Sequence record: NC_019411.1 | DNA: 64,000 nucleotides | Strand: one strand, 5' to 3' | Part shown: piece after piece, positions 524-37,758 of the stretch | Numbering within the stretch: position 1 is the stretch's first letter | Layout of the letters: the number at the start of each line of letters is the position of its first letter | The notes under the pieces: model-generated | The model's input: only the letters and a program-made list of their open reading frames with translations | What the model was told of the DNA's origin: nothing | The model's database searches: none | Translations under genes and position numbers: made by a program

Positions 524-581
524 GGAGGCCTCCTTGTTGTCGTCGAGGATGGCTTCTAGCCGGCCCAGGTCACGTTGTCAA
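524..581 (-). promoter_or_regulatory. sigma70-type cassette promoter + GACGACAAC + RBS
   Basis: TTGACA(581-576)-N17-TAGAAG...GACGACAAC AAGGAGG. Confidence 0.8.
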
Positions 582-898
582 CACTCGACAGCCAAGTAGA
601 CGTTGCGGCGCGGCTCATAGGGGAGATCGTTGGCGATCGCCATCAGCCAGCCGGCGTGGCAGCGCTTGGGAGCGCAGTGGCAGACGAGATGGAAGCCCTT
701 GAAGTTGGCCTTGACCCAGGCGACGAACGCCTCGTCCTTGGACTTCAGGGCGATGTACTTGTCGATCACTGTGTCGCGATCGCCATCCTGACCGATGCGG
801 AACTCGTTGCCCGCCGGGGTCCCCCGGCCGACGTACTTGGACATCGGCGGGAGATGGCCTGGGAACTCGCTTCGGCTGAGAACGCGCAGTTCGATCAT
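578..898 (-). CDS. DUF4326 family protein
   Basis: YVGRGTPAGNEF...LVCHCAPKRCHA motifs. Confidence 0.75.
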   Translation of the reverse strand: MIELRVLSRSEFPGHLPPMSKYVGRGTPAGNEFRIGQDGDRDTVIDKYIALKSKDEAFVAWVKANFKGFHLVCHCAPKRCHAGWLMAIANDLPYEPRRNVYLAVEC

Positions 899-1539
899 GC
901 CGCCCGGCTCTCCACGTAGTCGGCGAGGATCGCCAGGGTGTCCTCGGCCGAGGTGTGGAGGATCGAGAAGCCCCCAGCCCGGTTCCAGGCCACGCAGTTG
1001 GCGACGCGGTCGTCGATCAGGATTTGGTGGTCGGAGTGCTTGCGGTGCATGAATTCCTGCTTCTTGGCCGAGGTCGTGCAGATGAAGCGGTGGTCCTCGA
1101 TCCGGATGCGATCGGGCACCATGCCGGCCACGGCCTCGTCCCCGGAGAACATCTTGGAGAACGCCTCGGGCAGAAGCGTCTCCTCGATCCAGCGCCGCTT
1201 GCCATAGGCCGCGCCCAGCCAGTAGGGGTGGATCAGGAAGTCCTCGTCCGTCGCCCCGAACTTGGGCGAGGCGGTCAGGATGATCGGATCGGCCTCGAAC
1301 ACCGCCGTGTAGAGGTCGACGGCGCCGGGCATGAACGGCAGGGTCTCGAAGAAGTTCGTGCCCTCGATCTTGCGGTACATCCCCTGCTTCCAGAGGTTGG
1401 CTTCGTCGTCCATCGCGTGGCTCGACTTGTTGTACTCGGGATCGGGCTCGAACCCGAGCCGGCGGATGCCCGCGTCGAAATCGGCCAGGACGCCGTCCAT
1501 GTCGAGATAGATGGCGAAGTTCTTCAGGTTCATGGTCAC
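895..1539 (-). CDS. HAD-family 5'(3')-deoxyribonucleotidase-like protein
   Basis: YLDMDGVLADF, ILTASP, ILIDDRVANC motifs. Confidence 0.8.
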   Translation of the reverse strand: MTMNLKNFAIYLDMDGVLADFDAGIRRLGFEPDPEYNKSSHAMDDEANLWKQGMYRKIEGTNFFETLPFMPGAVDLYTAVFEADPIILTASPKFGATDEDFLIHPYWLGAAYGKRRWIEETLLPEAFSKMFSGDEAVAGMVPDRIRIEDHRFICTTSAKKQEFMHRKHSDHQILIDDRVANCVAWNRAGGFSILHTSAEDTLAILADYVESRAA

Positions 1540-1736
1540 TCCGGAAATTGCGCGTGCAGCCCCATGGCGATGCGCGCCAGTTCGTAGGCGGTCTTGGTCT
1601 CCAACTCGCGGGTCGGCGTGCGCTCGATCTTGAGTTGGTCGCTCATCATGTGGATGGCGTGGATGATGTCGCTCTTGCGCCTCTTCTCGTAGTAGCGGTG
1701 CGACGCGGTGGCGCGGATTTCGACGATCGCCATCAC
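1536..1736 (-). CDS. hypothetical protein
   Basis: packed co-oriented ORF, overlapping start/stop. Confidence 0.6.
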   Translation of the reverse strand: MMAIVEIRATASHRYYEKRRKSDIIHAIHMMSDQLKIERTPTRELETKTAYELARIAMGLHAQFPE

Positions 1737-2095
1737 AGGGCTCCCGCGCAGGCCAGAGCCATCGCCCAGCCGCGCTCGGTCGGCTCGAAGCGGGCGATCG
1801 GCCCCTTGACGTTCGGATCGTCGGAGAAATGCGGGTCGAGCCAGCCCTTGTTGGCGTGGATCACCTCGTCGAGCGAGCGCGCCTCATAGACCAGGATTTT
1901 GCGGCCCTCGTAGTTGAGGGCGTCGGGGTACATGATCTCGACCACCGTGCAGCGGCCGACCTCCTGGCCCCGGATGAGCCTCCAGCGCGCCGGGTCGGGA
2001 TCGCCCGGCGTCAGCGTCACGGGAGACTGCCCGCCGGAGAAAAGCCGCATCTTGCTGGGCTCACGCGCCGAGCGTCCGGTCGAGAACAATCGCAT
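1733..2095 (-). CDS. hypothetical protein
   Basis: packed ORF; start re-chosen at ATG 2095. Confidence 0.6.
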   Translation of the reverse strand: MRLFSTGRSAREPSKMRLFSGGQSPVTLTPGDPDPARWRLIRGQEVGRCTVVEIMYPDALNYEGRKILVYEARSLDEVIHANKGWLDPHFSDDPNVKGPIARFEPTERGWAMALACAGAL

Positions 2096-2102
2096 CCCCA
2101 CC

Positions 2103-2489
2103 CTAGTCTCCCAGGCCCTGCATGGCGTTGTCGCGACTGTCCTCGGCGTCGGGCCGAGACGCCAGGGCCGCCAGAAGGTCAACCGAGAGGTGGCGGTTGT
2201 AGATCGCCACGCCCTTATACTTGAAAAGCTCGCTGGCCTCGTGAATCAGCGCCCGCTCAACCGCCGCCCAGGCCGTCTGGACGATCTCGGTGTCGGTGGC
2301 GTAGTAGGAGAGCTTCCACTTGCGCCCCTTCCACATCTCCGGCTCGCCGGTGACGGTGTTGACCCCGTCCTTGCAGACGATCTGGAGCCAGACCTCCGTG
2401 CGGCTGGTCCCGAGTCGGAACTCGAAGCCAGGATAGCTCAGGCGGTCGACGATGGTGCGGATCGATTGGGCGCTGCGACGATTCGCCAT
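2103..2489 (-). CDS. hypothetical protein
   Basis: packed co-oriented ORF, phage-like codon bias. Confidence 0.7.
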   Translation of the reverse strand: MANRRSAQSIRTIVDRLSYPGFEFRLGTSRTEVWLQIVCKDGVNTVTGEPEMWKGRKWKLSYYATDTEIVQTAWAAVERALIHEASELFKYKGVAIYNRHLSVDLLAALASRPDAEDSRDNAMQGLGD

Positions 2490-2491
2490 GC

Positions 2492-2953
2492 TCAGGGCCT
2501 CGACTTGATCAGCTTCTTCTTGCGTCGGGGCGGGCGCGGCGCGAGCGGGAAGCCGTGATCCGCGTACACGGGTTCGGGCGGCGGGGCGGGGAGGTCCGCC
2601 GGGCGTTCCAGGCTAAAGGCGTCCGCGTCGAGGTCGTAGATCGACACCCGATCGCTGTAGCCGTAGCGGTTGTCATGGTAGGTGATCCCGACGTCTCCCA
2701 GGCTGGAGACCATGATCACCCGGCAGGCCTTGCCCTTGTAGCGGCCGTAGAGCTTCGGCATGAAGCCGGCCTCCTCGATCGCCAGGGTCTCGGTGGCGTT
2801 GCCGGCGTTCAGCGCCAGAAAGCCCCGCACGATGGCCGGCAGCTTGTAGTCGCAGATCGCGCGGCTGTTGCTGACCTCGTAGGGCATGCCGATCTTGCCC
2901 TCCATCAAGGCGCCCAGGACCTCGGCGTCGCTCAGGGTTTCAGTCTCGGCCAT
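2492..2953 (-). CDS. hypothetical protein
   Basis: start re-chosen at MAETET; basic C-terminal tail. Confidence 0.7.
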   Translation of the reverse strand: MAETETLSDAEVLGALMEGKIGMPYEVSNSRAICDYKLPAIVRGFLALNAGNATETLAIEEAGFMPKLYGRYKGKACRVIMVSSLGDVGITYHDNRYGYSDRVSIYDLDADAFSLERPADLPAPPPEPVYADHGFPLAPRPPRRKKKLIKSRP

Positions 2954-3209
2954 AGGTGATCCTGTACGGGAGCCCGCCGACGCAGATTTTCCCGCGTCGG
3001 CCGTCGGCGGTGGTGAAGCGGAAGCCCTGGCGGCTCTTGGTGCCGGCGCAGGACCACCATGCGCGGTGGAAGCTGACGACCTCGACGCCGGTGTCGCGCT
3101 CGACCAGATGTCGAGCATGACGTCCCTCCCAGGTGTAGGCCCAGACCCCGATGGCGAAGAAGACCAGAGTCAGGGAGCCATAGACGGCCCCTTTGACATA
3201 GTCCTCCAT
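2940..3209 (-). CDS. small membrane protein
   Basis: N-terminal hydrophobic segment. Confidence 0.65.
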   Translation of the reverse strand: MEDYVKGAVYGSLTLVFFAIGVWAYTWEGRHARHLVERDTGVEVVSFHRAWWSCAGTKSRQGFRFTTADGRRGKICVGGLPYRITYGRD

Positions 3210-3586
3210 CAGGCCGCCACGAGCCCGGTGATCACGTCGGTGACGATGCGACGCTTCTCGGCCGGCATGCCCGCCAGCGCCAGGATCGTCTTGGCGCCGA
3301 TCTCGGCGACGGCGGTCTCGACGTCGGCCCGGCCGTCGGTCAGGAACGCCGGATCGTCGACCGGCGGATAGAAATGCCCGATGTCCTTCTTCAGGAACTG
3401 GGCCGCCTCATAGAGCTTCGAGGACGAGATGCGGTTATGCCCGCGCTCGTATTTCTGGACCTGCTGGAAGGTCACGCCGATCGCCTCGGCGAGTTGGCCT
3501 TGCGAGAAGCCGGCCGTCTTGCGGGTGTCGCGCAGCTTGCGCCCCACATAGACGTCGACGGGGTGCGGGGTCTTGTCGTCAGCCAT
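3209..3586 (-). CDS. XRE-family HTH transcriptional regulator
   Basis: HPVDVYVGRKLR...SQGQLAEAIGVTFQQVQKYERGHNRIS. Confidence 0.9.
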   Translation of the reverse strand: MADDKTPHPVDVYVGRKLRDTRKTAGFSQGQLAEAIGVTFQQVQKYERGHNRISSSKLYEAAQFLKKDIGHFYPPVDDPAFLTDGRADVETAVAEIGAKTILALAGMPAEKRRIVTDVITGLVAA

Positions 3587-4565
3587 GAGCGGCTTCCTCC
3601 TTCTGCTTCTTGGACCGCAGGTCGCGGCGGTGTTTAAAGGCCGCGCGCAGGGCCTGGGTGGTGTCGTCGTGCATGCCCAGGTCCGCCCCATCGGGCGCGA
3701 CCACGCTGTTCTGGAGACCGAACCGATAGCCCTCGGCCGTCAGTTCATAGACCGCCTGCTCCTCGTGCATCTGGGCGAGGTGGCGATAATATTCGGCCAG
3801 CGCCAGTTCGTAGTCGCCCAGGAAGAGGCGCGCGTTGCGCTCGACGCCGGCGACCTCGGCGCGGAAGGTCAGCAGGAACCGCCCAGGCCCGACATGCGTC
3901 AGATTGTAGCCGTGTTCGGCCAGCACCTCGTCGACGGTCTTGGTGACCGTGTAGATGTGGAAGGTGTAGACGGCTTCGATGTGGGTGTCGTCGTAGAGAT
4001 ACTCGGACCGGTTTTGATGCTCGCCGATGTAGGGACCCCACTTGTGGTAGCGCCAGCCGCCGGACGCGGGCTGGTGCTCACGCCGGACTTCCACCATCGA
4101 GATGAAGTAGGGCGTGTCCGGATCGTCGATCAGGTCGGGGATGCAGGCGAGAAGCTGCTCGGGGCTGTCGCAGACGCCGTAGCTTTCGACCAGATAGGGG
4201 ATGCGCCTATAGCCCTCGGGGACCGGCGGGACCTCGTCCAGGTACTCGGTGTCGAGCACCTCGATCTTGTACTTGTCGTGGAGCAGCTTGATCCGCGCCT
4301 CGCGGCGGTCTCCGTCGGCCTTGATCCAGGCCCGGACCGCAGCGCTGCGTTCCTCCTCGGTCTGCCCGCGTTCGTAGGGCGGACCCCACTTGCTGTCGAG
4401 GTCCTCGATCTTTTCGACGATCTCGTACTCGGGATTCCAGGAGCCCATCGAGTAGACGCCCTGGTGGAGGCGAATGGGCTTGCGGGCGCGGTTGTTCATT
4501 TCCGCGATCATCTTGGCGATCGGGTCGACTTCCGAGGTGGGGCGCAGGGTGATGTCGTAGAGCAT
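3579..4565 (-). CDS. hypothetical protein
   Basis: 328 aa; TGATG coupling; YGVCDSPEQ and GGWRYHKWGPYIG blocks. Confidence 0.75.
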   Translation of the reverse strand: MLYDITLRPTSEVDPIAKMIAEMNNRARKPIRLHQGVYSMGSWNPEYEIVEKIEDLDSKWGPPYERGQTEEERSAAVRAWIKADGDRREARIKLLHDKYKIEVLDTEYLDEVPPVPEGYRRIPYLVESYGVCDSPEQLLACIPDLIDDPDTPYFISMVEVRREHQPASGGWRYHKWGPYIGEHQNRSEYLYDDTHIEAVYTFHIYTVTKTVDEVLAEHGYNLTHVGPGRFLLTFRAEVAGVERNARLFLGDYELALAEYYRHLAQMHEEQAVYELTAEGYRFGLQNSVVAPDGADLGMHDDTTQALRAAFKHRRDLRSKKQKEEAAHG

Positions 4566-4846
4566 CAGGCGGCGCCCTGGGCGATTTCGTAGGTGATCTT
4601 CGAGACGCCGATATCGACCACGAACCGGTCGGGCGAGCCGTCGAACACGTAGTTGGCCTGACACCCGATCGGCATCATCTTGCCGTTGTCCATCCAGATC
4701 GCGTCCGGCGTGGCCTCGACCACGCCGCGCACCTGCGCCTGGGCCGGAGAAGGTTGCATTTCCACGCCGCCCACGGTGATCGCCACGGCCGCGAGACGCG
4801 CGCCCGGCTGGTTCAACTTGGCGATCAGGTCCTGGATCGAGTTCAC
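4565..4846 (-). CDS. hypothetical protein
   Basis: GTG start with AAGGAGG RBS behind cassette promoter. Confidence 0.7.
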   Translation of the reverse strand: MNSIQDLIAKLNQPGARLAAVAITVGGVEMQPSPAQAQVRGVVEATPDAIWMDNGKMMPIGCQANYVFDGSPDRFVVDIGVSKITYEIAQGAA

Positions 4847-4906
4847 GCGGCCTCCTTCTGTCGTTGTGTCGACATAAGCTCTAGCCGTGGTTTTCCGGCC
4901 TGTCAA
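4847..4906 (-). promoter_or_regulatory. cassette promoter (variant GACACAAC)
   Basis: TTGACA-N17-TAGAGC...GACACAAC...GAAGGAGG. Confidence 0.75.
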
Positions 4907-4925
4907 CACACAACCGCCAAGGGTC

Positions 4926-4957
4926 AAAAGAAAACCGCCGCCCCGAAGGACGGCGGT
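4926..4957 (-). terminator. intrinsic terminator
   Basis: GC stem with TTCG loop followed by TTTTCTTTT on minus strand. Confidence 0.75.
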
Positions 4958-4983
4958 CATGACAGAGCATGTCAGGAGGGACG

Positions 4984-7107
4984 TCAGACGTCCAGAGCGA
5001 AGACCGGCGGGGAGACGTCCGGCTTCTGAATGATGAATCCCCGATCCAAGAGGGGCGGGAAGACCTGCTTGAGCACGCCGGCCGCGACCCCGGCTTCCTC
5101 GGCGATTTCGGCGAACGTGAAGGCCTCGCGCTGACCGGCGCTGGCGACAAACAGATCGTTGAGCGCCAGGATCACCGCGCCCGCCGGACTGATCTCGTAG
5201 GCCATGTCGAAATTCGGGTCTTCCGATAGCCGCAGCAGGCCTTCCGCCTCCAGGTTCGCGATGAGCGCCTTGAGTTGGTCGACCTTGACCGCGCCAAGAT
5301 GGGTTTGGATTTCCCAGGGCGTCGCCGGCTCCTCGGCGCGCACGGCTTGCAGCGTCGCGATCAAGGCGATCGCCGGCATGGCCCGCACGATCATCTCGTC
5401 GCCAACCGTCAGGTCCGGGGCGTTGACCAGCAGGTCATTGATCACCGCGTCGCCGTGGGTCTCGACATAGGTCCGCAGCCGCTTGAGGGCGACCAGGAAA
5501 TCGTCCTTGGTGATCGGCTCGATGCGGAAGGTCAGGAGCGGGTCGGTCGGAATCTCCGAGAAGTAGGCCCGACCCCGGTGGCTCCAGCCCTCGACCACAT
5601 GCAGGAAGAGATCGATCGGCATGGCGACGGCGCCAAAGCCCAGTCGCGCATCGTCCGTCGCCTCCTCGACCTGCGCCAAGGCGTTGTCGATCGCTTCGAG
5701 CGTGAAGCCCCCGACAAGGCCGTTTTCCGCCGCGTCCAGCACGTTGGCCGCTTCTTCGGTGCCGAGCCCTTCGACGACCATTTCCGAGGCCTCCTGAGCC
5801 GTTTCCTGCGGCAGGGCGTCGGCGAGCTTGCTCATCGCCTCGGCGACGCCGCTCGTATCGAGTTCCAGCTTCAGGGCCAGCTTCTCGGGACGCGCCGAGT
5901 AGGGCACGCCCTGGATCACCACGGCGCCCAGGTCGCCGACGACGCGCTTGGTCACTTCCAGATAGGCGTAGCGCGAGGCGGCGTTGAGCAACGACAGCCG
6001 TTCGAAGACGATCTGCTGCTCCTGCTCGCGCGACAGGATGCCCGTCTCCAGGATGAACAGCGGCTCGGAGCCATCCAGCGGGGGCTTGGCCTCGCCGTCG
6101 TCTTCCGGAAGGTCCTCGTCGAAATCGGCGCCGCTGATCGGCTCGCTCTCCGGCGGGGTGAAGCGGATGCCCGGCTCGCGGGGCGGTTCGGCGGGAGTGG
6201 CGTCGTCGAGAGGCATGTCGGTCCTTTGAGGCTTGGAGGTGATGAAGAGCGTGGTGAGATCGACGTCCCAGACCCCGCGCCCGTCGGTGAAGAGCGCCAT
6301 GAAGGTCCCCAGGCGCGCATCCCAGCGGATGGTCTGGATCACGCCGTTGACGTCGCCATAGACGCCGGTCGCCCCCACGAGTTCATCGCGCAGGACCTCC
6401 GCATGGTCGTGGCACTCGCCGAGCGTCGCCGGGCGCACGGCGTGGAACGGGTATTGCTGGTAGGCGCCCGGCGGCGAGACGAGGCGGACATTGACGTAGA
6501 GCGGCCCCAGATAGGTGTGGGCGTCGCGCAGGAAGCCGACCACGGTCTCCCCGTCGTTCTGGGTCGCCACCACGGGCATGCCGGCGCAGTTAGCCGTCAG
6601 GACCGCCGGATAGTCCTGGGGATAGGCCACGGCGTACAGGTGGAGATGATCACCCCGGCGCTGGGCCTTCCAGTCGGCGACACACCAAGCCGCCACCCGC
6701 GTGGCCCCGAACTCCGGCGTCTCCTCGATCAAGACGCCGCCGTCCGGAAGGTCCGCCTGCCCGACGTAAGGAACGACCTCGCTATGGCTGACGCTCCAGG
6801 CGGGCTTGGGAAATTGCGGGGTGATCATGAGCTTCTCGGTGAAGGTGAGATTGATGGCGTCGGCGTAGTGAACATACGGGCCGACCGGGGTAGTCCAGGG
6901 CGGATCACCCTTGCGGATGTCCGACAGCGGCACCGCGACGTGCCTGCCGTTGGGCTGGACGATGTCGGCCAGGATGCGCGGCGGCTGGTGCATCAGGGTC
7001 ACGACGTGCCCCTCGCCCGCCTCGAAGGTGCGGCTCTTGGGCCACCAGACCTTGGACCCGGTCCAGTGGATCGACTGGATGACGAGGTCTTGTTCGGTCC
7101 CGATCAT
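4984..7107 (-). CDS. large hypothetical protein with C-terminal winged-helix-like segments
   Basis: 707 aa; LIANLEAEGLLRL...YEISPAG and FAEIAEEAGV...LLDRGFI. Confidence 0.75.
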   Translation of the reverse strand: MIGTEQDLVIQSIHWTGSKVWWPKSRTFEAGEGHVVTLMHQPPRILADIVQPNGRHVAVPLSDIRKGDPPWTTPVGPYVHYADAINLTFTEKLMITPQFPKPAWSVSHSEVVPYVGQADLPDGGVLIEETPEFGATRVAAWCVADWKAQRRGDHLHLYAVAYPQDYPAVLTANCAGMPVVATQNDGETVVGFLRDAHTYLGPLYVNVRLVSPPGAYQQYPFHAVRPATLGECHDHAEVLRDELVGATGVYGDVNGVIQTIRWDARLGTFMALFTDGRGVWDVDLTTLFITSKPQRTDMPLDDATPAEPPREPGIRFTPPESEPISGADFDEDLPEDDGEAKPPLDGSEPLFILETGILSREQEQQIVFERLSLLNAASRYAYLEVTKRVVGDLGAVVIQGVPYSARPEKLALKLELDTSGVAEAMSKLADALPQETAQEASEMVVEGLGTEEAANVLDAAENGLVGGFTLEAIDNALAQVEEATDDARLGFGAVAMPIDLFLHVVEGWSHRGRAYFSEIPTDPLLTFRIEPITKDDFLVALKRLRTYVETHGDAVINDLLVNAPDLTVGDEMIVRAMPAIALIATLQAVRAEEPATPWEIQTHLGAVKVDQLKALIANLEAEGLLRLSEDPNFDMAYEISPAGAVILALNDLFVASAGQREAFTFAEIAEEAGVAAGVLKQVFPPLLDRGFIIQKPDVSPPVFALDV

Positions 7108-8527: not shown

Positions 8528-8556
8528 ACCCTAGAGGAGCGTTCGAGTGTTGACAA
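8528..8556 (-). promoter_or_regulatory. leftward promoter of gcrA operon
   Basis: TTGTCA-N17-TAGGGT on minus strand. Confidence 0.55.
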
Positions 8557-8582
8557 GCACCAATGTCGCTGGCTTTCGAGTG

Positions 8583-8641
8583 TTGACAAGTCCGGTGCTC
8601 GTCTATAGGGGAGACCGGGACGACAACGAAAGGAGCCTGCC
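8583..8641 (+). promoter_or_regulatory. cassette promoter
   Basis: TTGACA-N17-TAGGGG...GACGACAAC GAAAGGAG. Confidence 0.75.
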
Positions 8642-10573: not shown

Positions 10574-10828
10574 ATGCTGACCAAGGACGAGATCACCTTC
10601 GCGGGCCTGATCAAGGCCATGGAGGACGCCCGACGCACCGCCAAGGCGGCGGGCGATCTCGTCAGCACGGCCGAGATCGACCGCTGGTTCAAGGAACACG
10701 CGCCGATCATCCGGGAGGTCCGCGACAAAGCCGAGGCCGACGAATTCGACGCTGGCGCGAGAGTGTTGACAGCCTCTGAGGAAGGGGCTAAAGACACCCT
10801 CGACGACAGCGAAAGGAGCCTGCCTTGA
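10574..10828 (+). CDS. hypothetical protein
   Basis: packed ORF; 3' end overlaps next promoter. Confidence 0.55.
   Translation: MLTKDEITFAGLIKAMEDARRTAKAAGDLVSTAEIDRWFKEHAPIIREVRDKAEADEFDAGARVLTASEEGAKDTLDDSERSLP
10766..10824 (+). promoter_or_regulatory. cassette promoter (variant GACGACAGC)
   Basis: TTGACA-N17-TAAAGA...GACGACAGC GAAAGGAG. Confidence 0.75.
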
Positions 10829-13902: not shown

Positions 13903-13961
13903 TTGACAAGGTTCTGGGAACTCCTCTATACCCACGCTCGACGACAACGAGAGGAGTTCCC
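13903..13961 (+). promoter_or_regulatory. cassette promoter
   Basis: TTGACA-N18-TATACC...GACGACAAC GAGAGGAG. Confidence 0.75.
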
Positions 13962-17546: not shown

Positions 17547-17603
17547 TTGACAACACTTTCGCGCCAACATAGAACCGCCCTCGACGACAACGAGGAGGCT
17601 TCG
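17547..17603 (+). promoter_or_regulatory. cassette promoter
   Basis: TTGACA-N17-TAGAAC...GACGACAAC GAGGAGG. Confidence 0.85.
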
Positions 17604-19062: not shown

Positions 19063-19117
19063 TTGACAAGGCCGGCGCCGCTGGCCTAGAACGTCGTGGA
19101 CGACAACAGGAGGGACC
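19063..19117 (+). promoter_or_regulatory. cassette promoter
   Basis: TTGACA-N18-TAGAAC...GACGACAAC AGGAGG. Confidence 0.8.
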
Positions 19118-26406: not shown

Positions 26407-26426
26407 ATTTTGTTGGCGTTAGAACG

Positions 26427-26483
26427 TTGACAGCCTCGGCGTGATGTCATAAAAGCCTCCTCGACGACAACGAGGAGGCCCAC
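26427..26483 (+). promoter_or_regulatory. cassette promoter with 9-bp RBS-occluding inverted repeat
   Basis: TTGACA-N17-TAAAAG; GCCTCCTCG-ACGACAA-CGAGGAGGC. Confidence 0.85.
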
Positions 26484-27449: not shown

Positions 27450-27505
27450 TTGCCAAAGCTGATCTGATCAGCTAGAACCCTCGCCGACGACAACGAGGAG
27501 GCCCC
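27450..27505 (+). promoter_or_regulatory. cassette promoter (TTGCCA variant)
   Basis: TTGCCA-N17-TAGAAC...GACGACAAC GAGGAGG. Confidence 0.75.
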
Positions 27506-28650: not shown

Positions 28651-28679
28651 TTGACGGCGCGTCGATCGCCCGCTAAGAA
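28651..28679 (+). promoter_or_regulatory. sigma70-type promoter lacking GACGACAAC
   Basis: TTGACG-N17-TAAGAA. Confidence 0.55.
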
Positions 28680-28737
28680 GGGCTGACGGTCACGCTCTGG
28701 CTGCATGAATTTTCAATCCGAAAGGGGCCTTAAGTCC

Positions 28738-30768: not shown

Positions 30769-30787
30769 CGGAAGGACCTGAAAGACC

Positions 30788-31210: not shown

Positions 31211-31236
31211 GCCTCCGGGCGGGCTGACATAGGCGC

Positions 31237-31297
31237 TTGACAACACTCTCGCGCCAACATAGAAGGGCCTCCGACGACAACGCCGGAGGCCCTTTTC
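31237..31297 (+). promoter_or_regulatory. cassette promoter overlapping terminator-like hairpin
   Basis: TTGACA-N17-TAGAAG; GGGCCTCCG-N10-CGGAGGCCC-TTTT. Confidence 0.8.
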
Positions 31298-32055: not shown

Positions 32056-32056
32056 C

Positions 32057-32305
32057 ATGACCAAGTCCGTCCAGGTCCAGCGCGGCAAGACCACCTACCA
32101 CGTCACCTTCGACGAGGCCGGGCAGGTCTCGTCGATCATCGGCGTCGCGGTGGTCGGCAAGGTCCCGCGCTACAAGGGCGGGACGCGGCGCGTCACCTAT
32201 TCCGGCGCCGGCAACGGCTGGCACGCCAGCGCCGGCCGCCCCATCCCCATGCAGCTTCGCCCGATCGCGGACGAGGCGTTCCAGATCAAGGAGGCCCAGT
32301 CTTGA
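32057..32305 (+). CDS. hypothetical protein
   Basis: start MTKSVQ. Confidence 0.6.
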   Translation: MTKSVQVQRGKTTYHVTFDEAGQVSSIIGVAVVGKVPRYKGGTRRVTYSGAGNGWHASAGRPIPMQLRPIADEAFQIKEAQS

Positions 32306-33105
32306 GCGACTTCCAGCTTTCCGCCCAGCACCAGCGGATCGTCAACAACACGATCGACGCGCTGGACTATCTCTTCCGGCGCAACGGCGAGCCGTCCTCG
32401 GGCGGCGAGATGCCGTTCAACCGGCTCGATCTCGGGAGCATCGCCGACAACATCTCGGCCGTCCTGGCGGTGCTCCCCAGCCACGCCGACATCCTGACGA
32501 AGTACCTCTTCATCGCCCAGGGGCTGCTTCGCGAGATCGCCAACTACCACGCGGCCAAGCCTGACGAACTGCGCCGGATGGCGCAGGCCCTGCGCCCCTT
32601 CTACAAGACCCGCGCCGCCGCTGGTCTGTCGCCGGCGGCCCAGCAGACCCTCGATTTCATGGTCGAAGGCCTGCGCTTCCTGGCCGAGAACGACTGCGAG
32701 CCTCCGTCAGGTGGCGAGCAGATGTACAACCGCATCTCGCTTCTGAGCCGCACCGGCTCGGACGCCAAGCGCCTGCGCCAGGAGGCCCCCAACCTCGACG
32801 TGGTGATCACCCAGGTCGAGGCCCTGTTCATCGACCTCTGGCATTATCGCGCCATCGCCCTGAAGGACGTCCAGGACGCCTTGGAGGCCCTGGAGCCCTA
32901 CTATGTTCCGCCCGCCTGGACGGTCGCGCCGGCCCCTGCGCCGGCTAAGCCCGCCGCCCGCATCGTCTCGAAGGCCGAGGCCCTGGAACTCCTCGACCAC
33001 ATCGCCACGACGGCCTCCGTCCTGCGGATGCAGATGGGACCGGCCAACGCCGACATCACACTGGAGCGGGTCAAGACGCTCGAAGCCTTCGTCAATCAGC
33101 AATAG
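32302..33105 (+). CDS. hypothetical protein with internal tandem duplication
   Basis: EPSSGGEMPFNR and EPPSGGEQMYNR. Confidence 0.7.
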   Translation: MSDFQLSAQHQRIVNNTIDALDYLFRRNGEPSSGGEMPFNRLDLGSIADNISAVLAVLPSHADILTKYLFIAQGLLREIANYHAAKPDELRRMAQALRPFYKTRAAAGLSPAAQQTLDFMVEGLRFLAENDCEPPSGGEQMYNRISLLSRTGSDAKRLRQEAPNLDVVITQVEALFIDLWHYRAIALKDVQDALEALEPYYVPPAWTVAPAPAPAKPAARIVSKAEALELLDHIATTASVLRMQMGPANADITLERVKTLEAFVNQQ

Positions 33106-33113
33106 GGGCCAGC

Positions 33114-33563
33114 ATGACCACTCCGCTCTGTCTGAATCCGGACGGCGCCGACTTCCAGGCCCAGGCCGTCCTCGCCCTGGTCCGCTTCATCATCGGCGAC
33201 GACTTCGAGCCGTCCTGGAACGCCCAGAAGCAGGTCTTCGAGGGCGAGCCCCAAGTCGCCCGCTTCGATAGCCCGCGCTGCCACGGCTACGTGATCTGGC
33301 TGGTCGATCACCGCGCGGCGGTGTTCGGCGGCGAACCCCGGCAGATCAACATCACCCTCTACCAACACGGGGTCAGCGACGAGATCGTCATCAACGCGTG
33401 GCTGGGCGAAACCAACCGCTGGATGGTCCCGACCTATCACGACATGCCCGGCCTCGATCTGATGTTCAGGCACGTGACCTTCCGCTGCCTGGACGTCAAG
33501 TCAGCCGCCTACTACGTCGCCGACCTGATGAAGGAATTCTGGGCCGAGGGCTCGCCGCGATGA
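33114..33563 (+). CDS. hypothetical protein
   Basis: packed ORF. Confidence 0.65.
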   Translation: MTTPLCLNPDGADFQAQAVLALVRFIIGDDFEPSWNAQKQVFEGEPQVARFDSPRCHGYVIWLVDHRAAVFGGEPRQINITLYQHGVSDEIVINAWLGETNRWMVPTYHDMPGLDLMFRHVTFRCLDVKSAAYYVADLMKEFWAEGSPR

Positions 33564-33862
33564 GTGACCACGATGCCTGCCTGACCAACTGGGTCCTCTG
33601 CGACGCGCCCGGCGGCGGGCTGGTGGTGATCGGCGAGATCATGGCCGACAAGCGCGGGCGCTGGCCGGACGGGCGGCTCATCCACACCTCGCTCCTCCAG
33701 GCCAAGGCCGAGGCGGTGGCGCCGGGCGCGGTGGTCGCCACGCTCAACTCCCGCTACATCCTGGGACGCAAGGCCGAGGAGATCACCGTCCGGCACTTCG
33801 TCGGGGCGATGCTCGCCCGCGTCGCGATCAGACCGCTTGACAACACTCTCGCGCCAACATAG
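33560..33862 (+). CDS. hypothetical protein
   Basis: ATGA coupling; 3' end overlaps next promoter. Confidence 0.6.
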   Translation: MSDHDACLTNWVLCDAPGGGLVVIGEIMADKRGRWPDGRLIHTSLLQAKAEAVAPGAVVATLNSRYILGRKAEEITVRHFVGAMLARVAIRPLDNTLAPT

Positions 33863-33881
33863 AAGGGTCCTCGACGACAAC
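33837..33881 (+). promoter_or_regulatory. cassette promoter
   Basis: 34 bp identical to 31234-31267; GACGACAAC. Confidence 0.85.
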
Positions 33882-33929
33882 GGCTGTCCGAAATTTGTAG
33901 ACGGATTTCGGACATAGAGGAGCACCCCG

Positions 33930-34313
33930 ATGGCCCAGCGCCTGAAGATCAAGGAAGTCGTGGTGGCGCAGCAGGACGCTGTCTACCACTGGCGTGGCGA
34001 GGAAGGCGACGAGTATCAGGTCATGAGCCTCGTCCACGTCCAGACCCTGGACGGCCGCTGGTTCCTGATGCCGGCCATGCGCCCCTACACCCGCGCCGAG
34101 GAGGCCGCGTTCGACGAGGCCTGCGGCGAAATCCTGTTCGGGATGAAGACCCGCTACTCGGACCCGCAGGCCTTCGCCACCATCGTCCGCGCCGCCGGCT
34201 CGATCGATCCTGATCTGTGGGTCGAGTATCAGCCCGACACCCGCACCCTGGAAGAGAAGTTCCACGACGACTGGATCGAGGAACAGTTCGACCGTCAACG
34301 CTTCGCCGCCTGA
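33930..34313 (+). CDS. hypothetical protein
   Basis: GAGGAG RBS. Confidence 0.75.
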   Translation: MAQRLKIKEVVVAQQDAVYHWRGEEGDEYQVMSLVHVQTLDGRWFLMPAMRPYTRAEEAAFDEACGEILFGMKTRYSDPQAFATIVRAAGSIDPDLWVEYQPDTRTLEEKFHDDWIEEQFDRQRFAA

Positions 34314-34323
34314 GGAGGACCCG

Positions 34324-34791
34324 ATGAGCTACCAACAAGCCCTGATGGACGCCCAGGCCGCGTTCCACGCCCACGAGATGGACGTCAACGACCGCGCCTG
34401 GGAGCGCTGGCTCAAGAAGCTGGAGGACGTCCTCGGCTTCGATGTCGACGCCGACAACTCCGAGGAGGCCAAGGCCTTCCACTGCGACATGGGCTACTCG
34501 CTCGACGAGACCTTCGAGATGTTCGACAAGGGCATGAGCGTCGAGCAGGCCCGCGTCGCCATCCTGCGCGCGTGCTACGAGGCCGCCGCCCGCGCCGCCG
34601 GCGTGGGCCTGGACGCCCTGGTCGAGGCCGAGGCGCGCGCCGTCGCCACCCGCGACGCCCTGCCTGAAAAGCGCAAGGTGGACCGCGAGCAGTACGCCCG
34701 CTACGCCGAACTGCTGGGCAAGATGATCGCCCGCATCCGCGAGGTCGGCGACGACTCGGGCGCGGCGCTTGAGAAGGCGTTCGGCCAATGA
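34324..34791 (+). CDS. hypothetical protein
   Basis: GAGGAGG RBS. Confidence 0.75.
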   Translation: MSYQQALMDAQAAFHAHEMDVNDRAWERWLKKLEDVLGFDVDADNSEEAKAFHCDMGYSLDETFEMFDKGMSVEQARVAILRACYEAAARAAGVGLDALVEAEARAVATRDALPEKRKVDREQYARYAELLGKMIARIREVGDDSGAALEKAFGQ

Positions 34792-35015
34792 GCGGCGGTC
34801 TCCACATGCGCCGGATCGATCACCCGCCGGGCCATGAGCTTCACGGCGTCACCGAGCGCGAGTTCGAGTGGTTCGGCAAGTCCTACCACGTGCGCAAGGA
34901 GTCTGGCGCCGTGCGGGTCTGGGTCCGCAAGAAGCGCGGGAGCCACTATCGCTTCCTGTCGCGCGACAGCGTGATCGCCGCCTGCGTCCGCCAAGCCTCG
35001 GGGCTGTTCCAATGA
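34788..35015 (+). CDS. hypothetical protein
   Basis: ATGA coupling. Confidence 0.6.
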   Translation: MSGGLHMRRIDHPPGHELHGVTEREFEWFGKSYHVRKESGAVRVWVRKKRGSHYRFLSRDSVIAACVRQASGLFQ

Positions 35016-35404
35016 GCCGCCCGTCGATCGCGGTGGTCGCCGCCACGCCGGCCCTGGCGCCCATGCACTGGGAGATCGTCGACCTCAAGGTCTGCGACGA
35101 CAGCCGGGTCAAGCTGAACGGCGATGGGACGATGTTCGCCCGCGCCGCCGATCCGACGGCGCTGGGCTGGATTCCGTTCAAGATCGTCCTGGGCTGCTTT
35201 GAGACCTTCGCCGACGCCTACGAGGCCCGCAACAAGGCCCGGTCGCTCTGGTTCAAAGCGGCCGAAACGGTCGACGCCGCCGCCGAGGCGGTGGTCGCCG
35301 CAGAACAGGCCCTGGCGCGCGCCCGCGCCGTCCAGGCCCAAGCCGAAAGCGCCCAGCGCGCGTCCTGTCGCGAGCCGTTCCTCGGCACGCCCACCGACTA
35401 CTAG
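35012..35404 (+). CDS. hypothetical protein
   Basis: ATGA coupling. Confidence 0.65.
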   Translation: MSRPSIAVVAATPALAPMHWEIVDLKVCDDSRVKLNGDGTMFARAADPTALGWIPFKIVLGCFETFADAYEARNKARSLWFKAAETVDAAAEAVVAAEQALARARAVQAQAESAQRASCREPFLGTPTDY

Positions 35405-35412
35405 GAGGTCCC

Positions 35413-35790
35413 ATGCGCAAGCCCAAGAAGACCGAGCAGGCCTATATCGTGTCGGGGACGTGGCCGTTCCCGACCGACATGCTGCGCTACGACGACGCCC
35501 GCCCGGCGACCGAGGGCGACGCCAACCTGATCAAGGCTCTGGAGAGCGAGGACCCCTCGCTTTCGGACCTGCGCAACCGCGTCCAGATCAAGCTGATCCG
35601 CCCGGCCAACGGCTTGCCCGCCGTCAAGCGCTGGGAGTCCTTCCTCTGGAAGGTCGTGGGCGGCGACGAGGAGGTCGCGGCGGACGTGGCGTGGCGCGAC
35701 GCCCTGGATAACCGCGACGCCCTGCGCAAGTCCGGGCTCGCCAAGCTGACTCCCGCCGAGCGCGCCGCGCTCAATCTCGACATTCGCTAG
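35413..35790 (+). CDS. hypothetical protein
   Basis: AGGAGG RBS; FPTDMLRYD. Confidence 0.75.
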   Translation: MRKPKKTEQAYIVSGTWPFPTDMLRYDDARPATEGDANLIKALESEDPSLSDLRNRVQIKLIRPANGLPAVKRWESFLWKVVGGDEEVAADVAWRDALDNRDALRKSGLAKLTPAERAALNLDIR

Positions 35791-35804
35791 GACAAGGAGG
35801 CCCC

Positions 35805-36290
35805 ATGCCCTGCAATTCCGAATATCAACAGCCGAACGCGCGCGAAGCCGAGTCCAAGAAGGTCGCCGGCCTGCTGGTCTATGTCCACGATAAGCTGGGC
35901 CGCACCGATCTTTCGAGCAGCATCCGTACCATCGCCAACATCTATTACGGCGCGCCCGGCCGTTGCGATGAACTGACCGAACGGCTCTGCTCGATGCTGC
36001 GCGATCTGACGGTCGATGAGCAGAACGAGGTCATCTACGACGGCCGCAATCCCAAGGCGCGCGAACTGGCCGACTGGTGGGAGCGCCACCAGGAGCATGA
36101 CCGCAAGCGCGCCGAGGCCGAAGCCCAGGCCGCCAAGCCGACCCTGAAGCAAGCCGTCTCGGCGGTGATCGCCCAACTCGACTATTCGGCCGACGGCAAG
36201 GTGTTCCCGACCGAGGGGAGCGATCAGCTTCCTCCGAAGCTGGCCAAGGCCCTGAACGACATGACCGACGCCTGGAACGACGGGCGTTGA
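35805..36290 (+). CDS. hypothetical protein
   Basis: AAGGAGG RBS. Confidence 0.75.
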   Translation: MPCNSEYQQPNAREAESKKVAGLLVYVHDKLGRTDLSSSIRTIANIYYGAPGRCDELTERLCSMLRDLTVDEQNEVIYDGRNPKARELADWWERHQEHDRKRAEAEAQAAKPTLKQAVSAVIAQLDYSADGKVFPTEGSDQLPPKLAKALNDMTDAWNDGR

Positions 36291-36307
36291 TCGTTGGCTC
36301 CGATGTG

Positions 36308-36366
36308 TTGACAAGAAGCGGCGGCCTCCTGTAGAAGCATCCTCGACGACAACAGGAGGCCCCGCC
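36308..36366 (+). promoter_or_regulatory. cassette promoter
   Basis: TTGACA-N18-TAGAAG...GACGACAAC AGGAGG. Confidence 0.85.
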
Positions 36367-36861
36367 TTGACCGACACCATCGCGCCTGGAACCGAGTTCG
36401 AAGATGCCGTCACCCTCGGCGTCGAGATCATCCAGTCCAAGCCGCCGCACCTGACCGCCCGTGAGGCGGTCGAGAAGTTCCAACACCAGCCGGACGAGTT
36501 CCGCCTGCTGGTCACCCGCTTCAACAAGGCGACCGCCGCCTTGCCGGCGGTGGTCCACGGCCACCAGTTGCAGTCGACCTGCGCCAAGTGGGTGCTCGAC
36601 GCGGCCCAGCGGCTGCTCGACTTGCCGTTCGAGACGATTGAGCAGCGCGTGGCGTTCTACGCCAAGCAGATGACGCTCCCGGCCTATGGCTACCTGATGG
36701 ATCGCTACAAGGACCGGCTCGACGCCAAGATCGCCATCATCCGGGCCTGCCTGGAAGACCGCAACCACGTCGGCGCCAGCTACAACCTCGGCATCCTGGA
36801 AGAGGACTTCCAGGAGATGGTCGACCGTCACGACGATCTGGTCTCGGACGGCTACCCTTGA
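36367..36861 (+). CDS. hypothetical protein
   Basis: TTG start after RBS. Confidence 0.7.
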   Translation: MTDTIAPGTEFEDAVTLGVEIIQSKPPHLTAREAVEKFQHQPDEFRLLVTRFNKATAALPAVVHGHQLQSTCAKWVLDAAQRLLDLPFETIEQRVAFYAKQMTLPAYGYLMDRYKDRLDAKIAIIRACLEDRNHVGASYNLGILEEDFQEMVDRHDDLVSDGYP

Positions 36862-36933
36862 TGGGCGCTTGCAGCCGTCACAACTCCAGCCTAGCTTCCT
36901 CGCGCCGCGCTGTTGCGGTCATGAGGATTCGAA

Positions 36934-37194
36934 ATGGACAGGCTGAAAGTCAAGCTCTTCGCCAAGGGGATTCATACCTCGGCCGAGGCCCTGGTCGATG
37001 CGATCGCGGCGCTTCCGGAGGGGCCGGAGAAGGATGCGGTGGTCGCGGCCGAGAAGCAGTTGCACGCGCGGCTGAACTGGGGCGCGGCGAAGGCCGGCGA
37101 GTTCTTCGGGGACGAGTCGATCTCGCTCCTGGCGCAGCGGCGCACTGGCGGCGAGGACAAGCCGGACGCCCCCGAGGTTCCGCCCGGCGGCTGA
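36934..37194 (+). CDS. hypothetical protein
   Basis: GAGG RBS. Confidence 0.6.
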   Translation: MDRLKVKLFAKGIHTSAEALVDAIAALPEGPEKDAVVAAEKQLHARLNWGAAKAGEFFGDESISLLAQRRTGGEDKPDAPEVPPGG

Positions 37195-37204
37195 CGGGTG
37201 CGTC

Positions 37205-37729
37205 ATGGGCCTGACGGGCTGCACCTTCGCAGTCCTGACGGCCGGCTCGGTCGCCTATGCGATCGACCGTGGCGGCAAGGCGCTGAAGCTCAGCGCCTTC
37301 CTGCTGCTGGCGTCCTGGGCGTTCTCGGTCACCCTGGGCCAGACCCTCAACGCGGGCATGAAGCCCTATGTCTACGCCTGGGTCGACGCCCTGTTCGCCG
37401 GCGCGATGGGGATATTGATCTCCGCCCGACTTCAGCGCTGGCGGGTCGCCCTCTTCACCCTGGCGATCGCCCAGATGGGCCTCCACCTGATCATGATCGG
37501 GGTCTGGGATTTCTCGCTGCACGCGCGGCGCCTCCACATCCTAGCCCTCAACCTGACCTATGGCCTGGAACTCTTCGTCCTGACGATCGGGGCGGCGACC
37601 TATCGCGCCGAGGCCGAGGACGACATGCCGGCGGTGATCGAGGTCCAGCACCGCTTGATCGGGACCGACGACGGCCGCGTTCTCGATTGGCTTGAATGTG
37701 TTGACAAAGCCAGAGAGCCCGTCCTATAA
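37205..37729 (+). CDS. multi-pass membrane protein
   Basis: about five hydrophobic segments. Confidence 0.7.
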   Translation: MGLTGCTFAVLTAGSVAYAIDRGGKALKLSAFLLLASWAFSVTLGQTLNAGMKPYVYAWVDALFAGAMGILISARLQRWRVALFTLAIAQMGLHLIMIGVWDFSLHARRLHILALNLTYGLELFVLTIGAATYRAEAEDDMPAVIEVQHRLIGTDDGRVLDWLECVDKAREPVL

Positions 37730-37758
37730 GCTCCCTCGACGACAACGAGGAGGCCCCC
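37701..37758 (+). promoter_or_regulatory. cassette promoter
   Basis: TTGACA-N18-TATAAG...GACGACAAC GAGGAGG. Confidence 0.85.

Follow-up and report, generated by a model that had tools for sequence, protein, structure and literature searches.

What is the role of a nine-base sequence that recurs at the predicted start of transcription of many promoters in one phage genome? The window analyzed here is a 64-kb stretch of DNA, the final 64 kb of Caulobacter phage CcrSwift (JX100809.1), a virulent phage of ~220 kb. A preliminary description of this window listed 13 promoters that carry the 9-mer GACGACAAC or a variant of it and proposed that the element defines a temporal regulon, either read by a phage protein or acting as a shared 5' RNA tag. 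The 13 promoters exist as described, with every -35 position verified, and the motif is indeed absent from those at 28651, 45034, 46857 and 48755. Neither the 9-mer nor the small RNA discussed below is mentioned in the earlier literature that we searched.

The window holds 11 exact copies of the 9-mer, whereas dinucleotide shuffles predict 0.63 ± 0.72 (maximum of 3 in 100). All 11 copies sit within the tagged promoters, as expected for the promoter-coupled element at the predicted +1 that had been claimed. These promoters have a TTGACA -35 box (TTGCCA at 27450), a spacer of 17 or 18 nt and a TAnnnn -10 box (13/13 window sites), and in all 13 the tag starts 36-37 nt past the first T of the -35. 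Searching the rest of the CcrSwift genome for the same design added eight promoters, for a total of 21 (record positions 113675-192954). The tag begins 6-8 nt 3' of the -10 hexamer at all 21 sites, and at 12 of them the CTC immediately 5' of the tag is conserved. Most of the spacers between the -35 and the -10 are unlike one another, the exception being three near-identical copies (17547, 31237 and 33837). Because the spacers vary while the 9-mer is constant, the conservation of the tag reflects more than recent duplication.

The tag also has a regular relation to translation signals. A GGAG-type ribosome site follows it by 0-5 nt in 12 of the 13 window promoters, in line with the few nucleotides originally reported. 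At the remaining promoter (33837) the ribosome site lies ~40 nt further on, so the tag there is tied to the promoter rather than to the ribosome site. The standard leader of the promoter-proximal cistrons would be ~22-25 nt long and consist of the tag, 0-5 nt, GGAGG, a spacer and the start codon. The -10 form used by the Caulobacter host sigma-70/sigma-73 is GCtANAWC. A pattern of the sigma-70/sigma-73 type (TTGACA, 17-18 nt spacer, -10) fits the 13 window sites and the eight further ones (for instance, GCTAGAAC). The 9-mer would thus represent the first nine transcribed bases at about 21 phage promoters of the host-sigma type, with transcription probably starting at the tag.

Two of the window promoters are on the minus strand. 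The first (536..581; -35 at 581-576, tag at 544-536) drives gp215, and the second (4863..4906), which carries the variant tag GACACAAC at 4870-4863, drives gp225-gp224-gp223. On the plus strand, the promoter at 8583..8627 (tag 8619-8627) drives gp231, that at 10766..10810 (variant tag GACGACAGC at 10802-10810) drives gp239, and that at 13903..13948 (tag 13940-13948) drives gp245. The promoter at 17547..17591 (tag 17583-17591) belongs to the shared-spacer subclass (ACACTTTCGCGCCAACA) and drives gp251, and is followed by the promoters of gp255 (19063..19107, tag 19099-19107), gp272 (26427..26471, tag 26463-26471) and gp275 (27450..27494, tag 27486-27494). Two further members of the shared-spacer subclass drive gp281 (31237..31295, tag 31273-31281) and gp287 (33837..33881, tag 33873-33881). 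The last two promoters in the window drive gp293 (36308..36353, tag 36345-36353) and gp296 (37701..37746, tag 37738-37746).

Genome-wide, the tagged promoters are restricted to the two small-gene arms that lie at 113-193 kb of CcrSwift; the terminal repeat and the structural, lysis and replication modules have none. Promoters of other kinds are found as well. A consensus-type promoter upstream of gp279 (28651..28690, plus strand) provides a contrast case without the tag. Upstream of gp319 (48788..48797, plus strand), GAATCTTGAC fuses a CcrM-type GANTC site to the -35. This second class has 18 copies in the genome, all within the structural, lysis and replication modules, and has zero overlap with the tagged class.

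The proposal of a temporal regulon holds in so far as the tagged units form a genomically coherent set, with 21 promoters in the two arms. As regards timing, one tagged promoter, at 4906(-), drives an operon whose third gene, gp223 (3209..3586, minus strand), is the orthologue of phiCbK tgrL (gp216); its start, ATGGCTGACGACAAGACC, is the one found in the published tgrL cloning primer. In phiCbK, tgrL was found experimentally to be an early gene that falls after 15 min. An RNA-seq series exists for phiCbK (GSE241057). Co-expression from one promoter class does not alone explain a temporal switch.

The only exact copy of the 9-mer in the CcrSwift genome that is not in a promoter is antisense and lies outside the window, in a non-coding gap, 8 nt 5' of an annotated terminator. 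The sequence 5' of this copy reads TGGCG-N5-GTGTTGACA-N17-TAAAAC. It belongs to a conserved unit of ~96 nt (plus strand, ~52255-52351 of JX100809.1, -35 at 52220) with the tRNA cluster on one side and the gene upstream of phoH on the other. The unit resembles a small RNA (sRNA) gene: a promoter of its own is followed by a 5' stem-loop, an unpaired linker and an intrinsic terminator, the last already annotated in the phage records. The promoter has the same upstream architecture as the tagged promoters. In CcrSwift the linker is CUUCUGCGUUGUCGUC, which complements the leader over the stretch that starts at +1 and includes the Shine-Dalgarno (SD) sequence. By chance alone, about one stray antisense 9-mer would be expected per genome, so the case for an sRNA rests on location, conservation and co-variation.

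The unit is bounded by TTGACA-N17-TA(A/C)AAC and by a GC-rich hairpin with a U-run in Swift, phiCbK, BL57, BL10 and Rogue, and likewise in Bajun, Colossus, PW, Domovoi and Gurke. It has no start codon and no ribosome site, and the BL57 copy carries a 1-nt indel. In an alignment of the first five phages, the linker GAGCYTCTG(T)CGTTGTCGTCAGRAACGG is invariant but for one C/T change, one A/G change and the 1-nt insertion of BL57. In the same alignment, changes occur in the promoter spacer, the 5' hairpin and the terminator, yet each hairpin persists (for instance, GGACC/GGTCC versus GGGCC/GGCCC). RNAalifold on an automatic alignment reported one-sided changes only; a change from A-U to G-C in the 5' hairpin was seen by eye. 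In minimum-energy folds, the complement of the tag is unpaired between two hairpins in Swift, BL57, BL10, Rogue, Colossus and Domovoi. The mean unpaired probability of this seed is 0.53-0.61, compared to 0.22-0.39 elsewhere, with the exception of CcrPW (0.11). Rfam searches returned no matches at the gathering score in the window, and on the sRNA region they returned only tRNAs plus a chance-level P17 match (E 0.49). The putative sRNA gene is predicted to be expressed, and its product would pair with the leaders in vivo.

At the syntenic position, Bajun, Colossus, PW, Domovoi and Gurke have homologues of the RNA in which an anti-SD block precedes ...RUCGUC.... CcrColossus, a phage of the CcrSwift host, has a different tag: its promoters carry TGACGATCA (GACGAT in 12/18), and its syntenic linker, CCUCCUGAUCGUCAAG, holds UGAUCGUCA. 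As both differ from their Swift counterparts, tag and RNA co-vary. Seed matching was scored as at least 7 contiguous Watson-Crick matches within the +1 zone of the leaders. By this measure, 62% of Swift leaders match their own seed and 0-10% a foreign one; the corresponding values are 92% and 0-23% for Rogue and 67% and 11-22% for Colossus. The match is poorer in other phages. More Bajun leaders match the Swift seed (62%) than the Bajun seed (25%), Domovoi leaders match their own seed weakly (38%), and Gurke leaders (TGACA...) have no complementarity to the 3' part of their own seed. The context of the ribosome site follows the seed in Domovoi (GGAGGACC with GGUCCUCC) and Bajun (AAGGAGAC with GUCUCCUU). 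In CcrSC the syntenic site lacks the RNA, and the promoters lack a GACGAC tag. Thus, the co-variation is clear for the Swift/Rogue group versus Colossus and weaker in Bajun, Domovoi and Gurke.

The cognate seed gives the best mean duplex energy in Swift/Rogue, Bajun and Colossus, with z scores of -10 to -17 relative to shuffled seeds. When a leader is co-folded with the complete sRNA, 18-25 kcal/mol is gained and the region from +1 through the SD is paired. As a genome-wide scan, duplex energy is unspecific: the leaders rank in the top 0.1-1% of windows, and ~20 coding windows equal them.

The explanation that we favor, with moderate confidence, is that the 9-mer is the seed-match of a trans-acting phage sRNA that would mask the 5' end and the ribosome site of promoter-proximal early cistrons. 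The sRNA linker would pair with the leaders from +1 through the Shine-Dalgarno and would presumably block ribosome loading on the first cistron of every tagged unit, with decay or Rho polarity along the operon likely to follow. A block-wide response would need the tag at every serial promoter. Because the sRNA promoter and its target promoters are alike upstream, the circuit resembles an incoherent feed-forward loop, which would yield a pulse of early expression. The tag would then be what lets a single small RNA control an entire block of early genes. The shared 5' RNA tag is thus the option in the preliminary description that gained ground, through a conserved RNA linker that complements tag and ribosome site and co-varies between lineages. 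That description had also named GcrA, an XRE or a wHTH protein as a possible reader; nothing points there, and the partner found is an RNA.

The 9-mer could instead act as DNA, an alternative that we consider possible but unlikely. RNA polymerase and a phage protein would read it as an initially transcribed or discriminator-proximal element, or it would be a +1 operator for a phage repressor; it would set start-site choice, promoter escape or shut-off, and the antisense copy would be a further binding site or a coincidence. This would account for the fixed 6-8 nt to the -10 at 21/21 sites even where the ribosome site is distant (33837 in the window; L147 34758 and 38426 in Colossus, where the tag-to--10 distance is also fixed), for the conservation in 12/21 sites of a CTC that would not be transcribed, and for the coupling of all exact tag copies to promoters, with none before internal genes. 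It leaves unexplained why the complement lies beside an anti-SD block in the unpaired linker of a conserved RNA bounded by a promoter and a terminator. The anti-SD block, moreover, has U facing G, a pairing that RNA tolerates but that would have no meaning for a shared DNA site. No candidate protein has been identified, and a host factor is unlikely to be the only reader, given that two phages of one host, CcrSwift and CcrColossus, have different tags. Since a pure anti-SD model needs neither the fixed distance to the -10 where the ribosome site is 40 nt off nor the conserved CTC, these two features hint at an additional role of the tag at the DNA level.

Improbable, in our view, is that the tag serves as a hairpin loop, with the discriminator (CCTC...) paired to the ribosome site (GAGG...), so that read-through RNA would be terminated or have its ribosome site hidden while transcripts started in the loop escape. 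The tag does fold into a loop at 11/21 sites, with a mean of -8.7 kcal/mol versus -6.5 kcal/mol for shuffled discriminators. For instance, at 26427 the discriminator CCTCCTC pairs with GAGGAGG. At 31237 the loop belongs to a GC-rich hairpin followed by a T-run, annotated as a terminator in the record (31268-31295); this site and record 132819 are the two whose hairpin, with its T-run, is strong enough for such annotation. Colossus has analogous cases (for example, CCTCCATG...CATGGAGG). However, half of the sites lack the hairpin, and a loop needs no set sequence, so neither the conservation of the 9-mer nor its lineage-specific change would be explained. Some units may have the hairpin as an extra layer, but it does not account for the tag. 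A nut boxB antitermination hairpin of the lambda/P22 type was also considered and rejected, as half of the sites have no hairpin and the hairpin does not lie wholly within the transcript: its 5' arm fills the 6-8 nt between the -10 and the tag and is thus upstream of any plausible start of that promoter.

Copying of a mobile or recombining promoter cassette, with the 9-mer kept merely by descent or gene conversion, would suit the near-identical spacer at 17547, 31237 and 33837 and the identity of the whole leader at window 31237 and record 132819. As a sole explanation it is disfavored, and we give it very little probability: other sites combine unrelated spacers and flanks with the exact 9-mer, and the core persists across genera (Bajun, Domovoi) and shifts coherently in Colossus. 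Least credible of all is a translation enhancer pairing with 16S rRNA, toward which point the literature matches to the 9-mer (mostly 16S primer lists) and the sequence UGUCGUCAG, complement of CUGACGACA, which we take to lie in the universal 1055F primer region AUGGCUGUCGUCAGCU (16S helix 34) and presumably to be common to that segment and the Swift sRNA linker; but helix 34 is base-paired within the ribosome, and Colossus, with the same host and so the same 16S, has a tag that deviates from the rRNA complement and tracks the Colossus sRNA.

Several known systems share parts of this design, which also occurs in relatives of CcrSwift, Brevundimonas phages among them. T4-type PeSL are likewise repeated early-promoter modules, some with a stem-loop, that punctuate runs of small genes of unknown function. 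They occur in hyperplastic regions and have been proposed to drive modular recombination. We know of no trans-acting RNA partner of PeSL cassettes, and unlike them CcrSwift conserves what are predicted to be the first nine transcribed bases, with a stem-loop at only ~11/21 sites. The SAS/ESAS of cluster K mycobacteriophages similarly place a short conserved sequence with a ribosome site before a subset of phage genes. The SAS is positioned relative to the start codon, and to our knowledge no complementary RNA has been reported for it. The CcrSwift tag is not an SAS, as it is fixed to the -10 and not to the start codon (case 33837), its distance to the ribosome site ranging from 0-5 nt up to ~40 nt. 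The early promoters of T5 are also strong host-sigma promoters of a large virulent phage at which the sequence after +1 matters, but there the effect is on promoter clearance and depends on composition, not on an exact shared 9-mer with a complementary RNA.

The candidate RNA itself resembles Hfq-type sRNAs such as RybB and Spot 42 in having a 5' stem-loop, a single-stranded conserved seed and a Rho-independent terminator with a U-tail. As is predicted here, their seeds pair at or near the ribosome sites of many mRNAs. Their regulons consist of unrelated leaders with imperfect matches, whereas CcrSwift has an identical 9-mer at the +1 of a standardized cassette. Closest in the proposed action are the c4 RNA of P1/P7 and the CI RNA of P4, in which a small phage RNA pairs with short repeated sites in phage mRNAs, including the ribosome binding site, and blocks expression (PMC12197685). 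As in P1/P7 heteroimmunity, target and RNA co-vary among related phages (PMC12197685). The c4 and CI RNAs act in the immunity of temperate phages, are processed from the operon that they control and have two to three targets, whereas the CcrSwift RNA has its own promoter and terminator and lies far from the ~21 separate 5'-tagged units.

The window matches the genome of Caulobacter phage CcrSwift (Swift; JX100809.1, 219,216 bp) at 100% identity, and window positions equal record positions minus 155,216. The right terminal repeat forms its last ~10 kb, and the GC content of window and genome is ~65-66%. The span 524-37758 is occupied by small, mostly unannotated genes arranged in two divergent arms that flank a GcrA-like gene. 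All 13 promoters that the preliminary description had placed in this span are present, each with TTGACA (TTGCCA at 27450), a spacer of 17 or 18 nt and TAnnnn (frequently GCTAGAAC/G), followed after 6-8 nt by the 9-nt tag at the predicted +1. The tag reads GACGACAAC at 11 sites, GACGACAGC at 10802 and GACACAAC at 4870(-). The window holds 11 exact copies of the 9-mer, each within one of these promoters, against 0.63 copies expected from shuffled sequences (maximum of 3 in 100 shuffles). GGAG-type ribosome sites lie 0-5 nt downstream of the tag, except at 33837 (~40 nt downstream), and the promoters at 28651, 45034, 46857 and 48755 lack the tag, as had been claimed. A motif search across the genome and its relatives revealed eight further CcrSwift promoters of the same design, and the tag also in relatives, which confirms and extends the earlier observation. 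The 21 tagged promoters of CcrSwift run from record 113675 to 192954; the terminal repeat and the structural, lysis and replication modules have none. Spacer sequences are near-identical in three promoters (17547, 31237 and 33837) and unrelated among most of the others, so conservation of the 9-mer stands out from a drifting background.

Other elements accompany these promoters. TTGGC(G/T) lies ~15 nt upstream of the -35 in 10 of the 13 window sites (for instance, 596-600(-), 26412-26416 and 36293-36297), and most tagged promoters have GTG immediately 5' of the -35. The three shared-spacer promoters have neither and carry GCCAAC within the spacer instead. Both forms fit, in two registers, an imperfect 21-bp palindrome, TTGNC-N11-GNCAA, that could be the site of a dimeric factor. 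Variant tag sites were found outside the window at JX100809.1 141798(-), with CACGACAGC behind a consensus promoter, and 10221(+), with GACGACAC right after the left terminal repeat. A look-alike at 124619(-), the gp151 start (ATGACGACAGC), stands behind a TTGACA without a clear -10. The divergent promoter TTGTCA-N17-TAGGGT at window 8556(-) (region 8530-8560) serves the gp230/GcrA-like operon and has no tag; its palindromic -35 region (GTGTTGACAACAC type) is shared with the neighboring plus-strand element. For the TGGC upstream of the tagged promoters, a sigma-54 reading was rejected because the spacing is wrong. CtrA, DnaA, LexA and FNR boxes gave no match, Hfq ARN and NAD-capping consensus sequences fitted poorly, and a boxB-like reading failed because the hairpin arm is upstream of +1.

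Many copies of the tag occur in the relatives Karma, Rogue and CcrBL10. The Brevundimonas phage Bajun, which infects a different host genus and has a portal protein 67% identical, shows the same promoter layout: GTGTTGACA-N17/18-TAnnnn-N6-8, GACGAC or ACGAC, then AAGGAGAC. In Domovoi, also a Brevundimonas phage, part of the promoters have GACGAC followed by GGAGGACC. CcrColossus (Colossus) infects the same host as CcrSwift, and its tag at this position differs; TGACGATCA predominates, and GACGAT was present in 12 of 18 promoters from a motif-blind scan. The early regions of Colossus and the Brevundimonas phages were located by synteny; tblastn with the GcrA-like protein did not reach these phages. 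GACGAC-type tags are absent from the promoters of CcrSC, another phage of the same host. Searching IMG/VR for the promoter plus tag returned at least 118 loci, where a few hundred were estimated by chance, and outside CbK-like phages there were only single, chance-level matches.

Promoter form differs among the relatives in further respects. Between 190 and 240 kb Colossus has two promoter flavors, both with the Colossus tag: one has GAGAG 5' and GACGGC 3' of TTGACA, and the other is TTGAC(G/A/C)-N10/11-TTTCTT abutting TACAAG, the TTTCTT block being extended -10-like. Domovoi and Gurke have an analogous TTCCTT-TAC. In CcrSC, promoters at 225-275 kb have a conserved AGAAAnCTG abutting TTGACA upstream and, in some, GTCAAC near +1, a promoter grammar that differs although the host is the same.

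The sole exact 9-mer outside the promoters of the CcrSwift genome lies at record 52299-52307, where the plus strand reads the complement, GTTGTCGTC. It falls in a non-coding gap that separates the last tRNA of a cluster from the gene preceding phoH, with a terminator annotated in the record 8 nt downstream and a promoter of the same family ~45 nt upstream (TGGCG-N5-GTGTTGACA-N17-TAAAAC). The predicted transcript (~96 nt, record ~52255-52351, plus strand; hereafter the sRNA) has no start codon and no ribosome site. Its predicted fold consists of a 5' stem-loop, an unpaired linker that is exactly CGUUGUCGUC, and a terminator hairpin with a U-rich tail. We thus identify a specific candidate partner for the tag. 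The promoter of this RNA also shows the upstream form of the TTGNC-N11-GNCAA arrangement.

Among Swift, phiCbK, BL57, BL10 and Rogue, the sRNA region is 76-99% identical. The linker varies only by one C/T, one A/G and one inserted base; the promoter spacer, 5' hairpin and terminator vary, and each hairpin is kept. For instance, reading by eye showed an A-U to G-C change in the 5' hairpin (GGACC/GGUCC vs GGGCC/GGCCC). RNAalifold on automatic alignments, in which this hairpin was mis-registered, reported one-sided changes and no double compensatory ones. No Rfam family matched the sRNA, and an IMG/VR scan for its design returned Karma, Rogue and BL10 plus unrelated AT-rich matches. Syntenic RNAs of the same architecture are present in five further phages, with the linkers GGUCUCCUUUCAUCCGUCGUCAG in Bajun, GGGCCUCCUGAUCGUCAAG in Colossus and CcrPW (PW), GGUCCUCCGUCGUCAAG in Domovoi and GUCCUCCUUAUCUAUCGUCGG in Gurke; in each, a block complementary to the Shine-Dalgarno (SD) site precedes one complementary to the tag. 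The syntenic gap of CcrSC, which lacks the tag, has no RNA of this kind, and no comparable gap or RNA was found upstream of phoH in Mesorhizobium phage Cp1R7A-A1.

Complementarity between the standard leader GACGACAACGAGGAGG and the linker with its 5' neighbor (CUUCUGCGUUGUCGUC) extends from +1 through the SD, with one mismatch and two G-U pairs. Co-folding of the full-length sRNA with representative leaders gained 18-25 kcal/mol over the separate folds and kept the terminator hairpin. An exact complement of TGACGATCA, the tag of the Colossus promoters, is found in the Colossus linker, and in the 58.7 kb of Colossus examined this antisense 9-mer occurs nowhere else. In order to assess co-variation, we gathered promoters without reference to the tag and scored leaders for uninterrupted runs of 7 or more Watson-Crick matches within the +1 zone. 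The leaders of Swift (62% with their own seed, 0-10% with foreign seeds), Rogue (92% vs 0-23%) and Colossus (67% vs 11-22%) matched their own linker, or seed, best. By mean whole-leader duplex energy, the leaders of Swift/Rogue, Bajun and Colossus paired best with the cognate seed (z from -10 to -17 relative to shuffled seeds). The SD context tracks the seed as well: Domovoi combines GGAGGACC with GGUCCUCC, and Bajun combines AAGGAGAC with GUCUCCUU. Within the +1 zone, the Swift seed is a better fit to Bajun leaders than the Bajun seed is, and Domovoi leaders match weakly; Gurke leaders (TGACA...) are complementary only to the anti-SD part of their own RNA.

Duplex energy proved a poor discriminator in a 66% GC genome: a genome-wide scan placed the leaders in the top 0.1-1% of windows without singling them out, as ~20 coding windows scored equally. 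We therefore based the argument on contiguous complementarity together with position and co-variation. A genome may hold one stray 9-mer by chance, and thus the case depends on its location, its invariance and the coordinated change in Colossus.

The tag could instead act at the DNA level, by influencing start-site choice or promoter escape, or by serving a phage protein as operator. Its coupling to the -10 is strict, including at promoters with a distant ribosome site, and a conserved CTC lies immediately upstream of the tag. A host-only reader is unlikely, given that Swift and Colossus have one host and differ in tag; the complementary, co-varying RNA favors the option of a shared 5' RNA tag, which the earlier interpretation had raised. 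DNA-level and RNA roles may coexist. A hairpin between the discriminator and the ribosome site, with the tag as its loop, is present at about half of the sites, and two tagged promoters overlap annotated Rho-independent terminators (window 31268-31295 and JX100809.1 132800-132827) with the tag as loop and the ribosome site as 3' arm, so that the same DNA may stop one unit and start the next; this leaves the fixed loop sequence unexplained. The Swift sRNA linker has UGUCGUCAG in common with the universal 16S rRNA segment of primer 1055F. Pairing of the tag with 16S rRNA helix 34 is contradicted by the Colossus tag, which departs from the rRNA complement, and because Colossus departs from this segment the overlap is probably a coincidence. 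Simple cassette duplication conflicts with the variable spacers and with the tag being conserved across genera.

In the sRNA reading, which we consider the likeliest, host RNA polymerase would initiate on the tag's first G or right beside it, 6-8 nt beyond the -10, and each unit would then begin with tag, ribosome site and first cistron. The sRNA would bind the 5' end and ribosome site and block initiation on the first cistron. Because downstream genes in tagged units mostly overlap or closely abut, we infer that an untranslated operon head would leave the rest open to decay or Rho polarity. Successive promoters are 1-3 kb apart with no strong terminators between them, so each would need the tag for block-wide control, which would account for the repetition. 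The sRNA promoter has the same upstream design as its targets (TGGCG...GTG-TTGACA), which suggests that sRNA and targets are co-activated and then repressed, giving a pulse. This would agree with a published phiCbK time course, in which 41% of the genes, tgrL among them, peak by 15 min and then fall. The tgrL orthologue gp223 (window 3209-3586(-)) belongs to the operon of the tagged promoter 4906(-), and the term temporal regulon is anchored on tgrL only; the sign and timing of regulation are inferred.

A GANTC site of the CcrM type is fused to the -35 TTGAC in GAATCTTGAC, of which CcrSwift JX100809.1 has 18 copies, one at window 48788-48797. All are upstream of structural, lysis or replication genes (portal, tail tube, endolysin, NrdA, helicase and others) or gp319, and the tagged 113-193 kb block has none except at its edge. 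The element also follows the sRNA gene in Bajun, Colossus and PW and is present at the corresponding place in CcrSC. This element probably defines a second class of promoter, which the phage's GcrA-like protein may serve, and the two classes partition the genome, which aids annotation of ~190 unknown genes. The 700-bp non-coding gap between gp318 and gp319 also contains a very-low-GC island (~240 bp, window 48220-48460; genome 66% GC), for which candidate explanations are an origin, a signal for packaging or entry, and foreign DNA.

In large virulent phages, temporal control is generally credited to proteins: sigma factors, anti-sigmas, RNA polymerase modifiers and nucleases like RegB. Our candidate is a viral sRNA regulon in a virulent jumbo phage, in which an RNA of ~100 nt reads a 5' 9-nt tag on ~20 early units and silences them as a set with the help of an anti-SD block, tag and seed co-evolving across Dolichocephalovirinae in two host genera. 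On the sequence evidence that makes up the whole tag-sRNA finding, we give this a little less than an even chance. If true, this would be another kind of switch, compact and post-transcriptional, in which one phage RNA reaches about twenty early operons by their 5' tag, with lineage-specific addresses for early-gene shut-off. It would explain the identical leader at every serial promoter in long runs of small genes, and offer a handle for turning the whole early block of phiCbK, a standard Caulobacter tool phage, up or down. Even without the sRNA link, the tag marks a clean, previously unreported promoter class.

The subscription-free literature searched held no description of the tag motif or the sRNA. 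Mycobacteriophage SAS and the downstream promoter regions of T5 bear a partial resemblance and fail on defining points, and so, less clearly, do the PeSL cassettes of T4. The nearest precedents are P1/P7 c4 and P4 CI, trans-acting antisense RNAs of temperate phages (PMC12197685) that, as proposed for Swift, pair with repeated sites in their own phage's transcripts and co-vary between relatives; bacterial seed-type sRNAs with multi-gene regulons are also close. CcrSwift differs from these in being a virulent phage of ~220 kb, in its putative free-standing sRNA gene far from the targets, in its ~21 predicted targets, and in a standard promoter-leader cassette whose +1 always carries the same tag.
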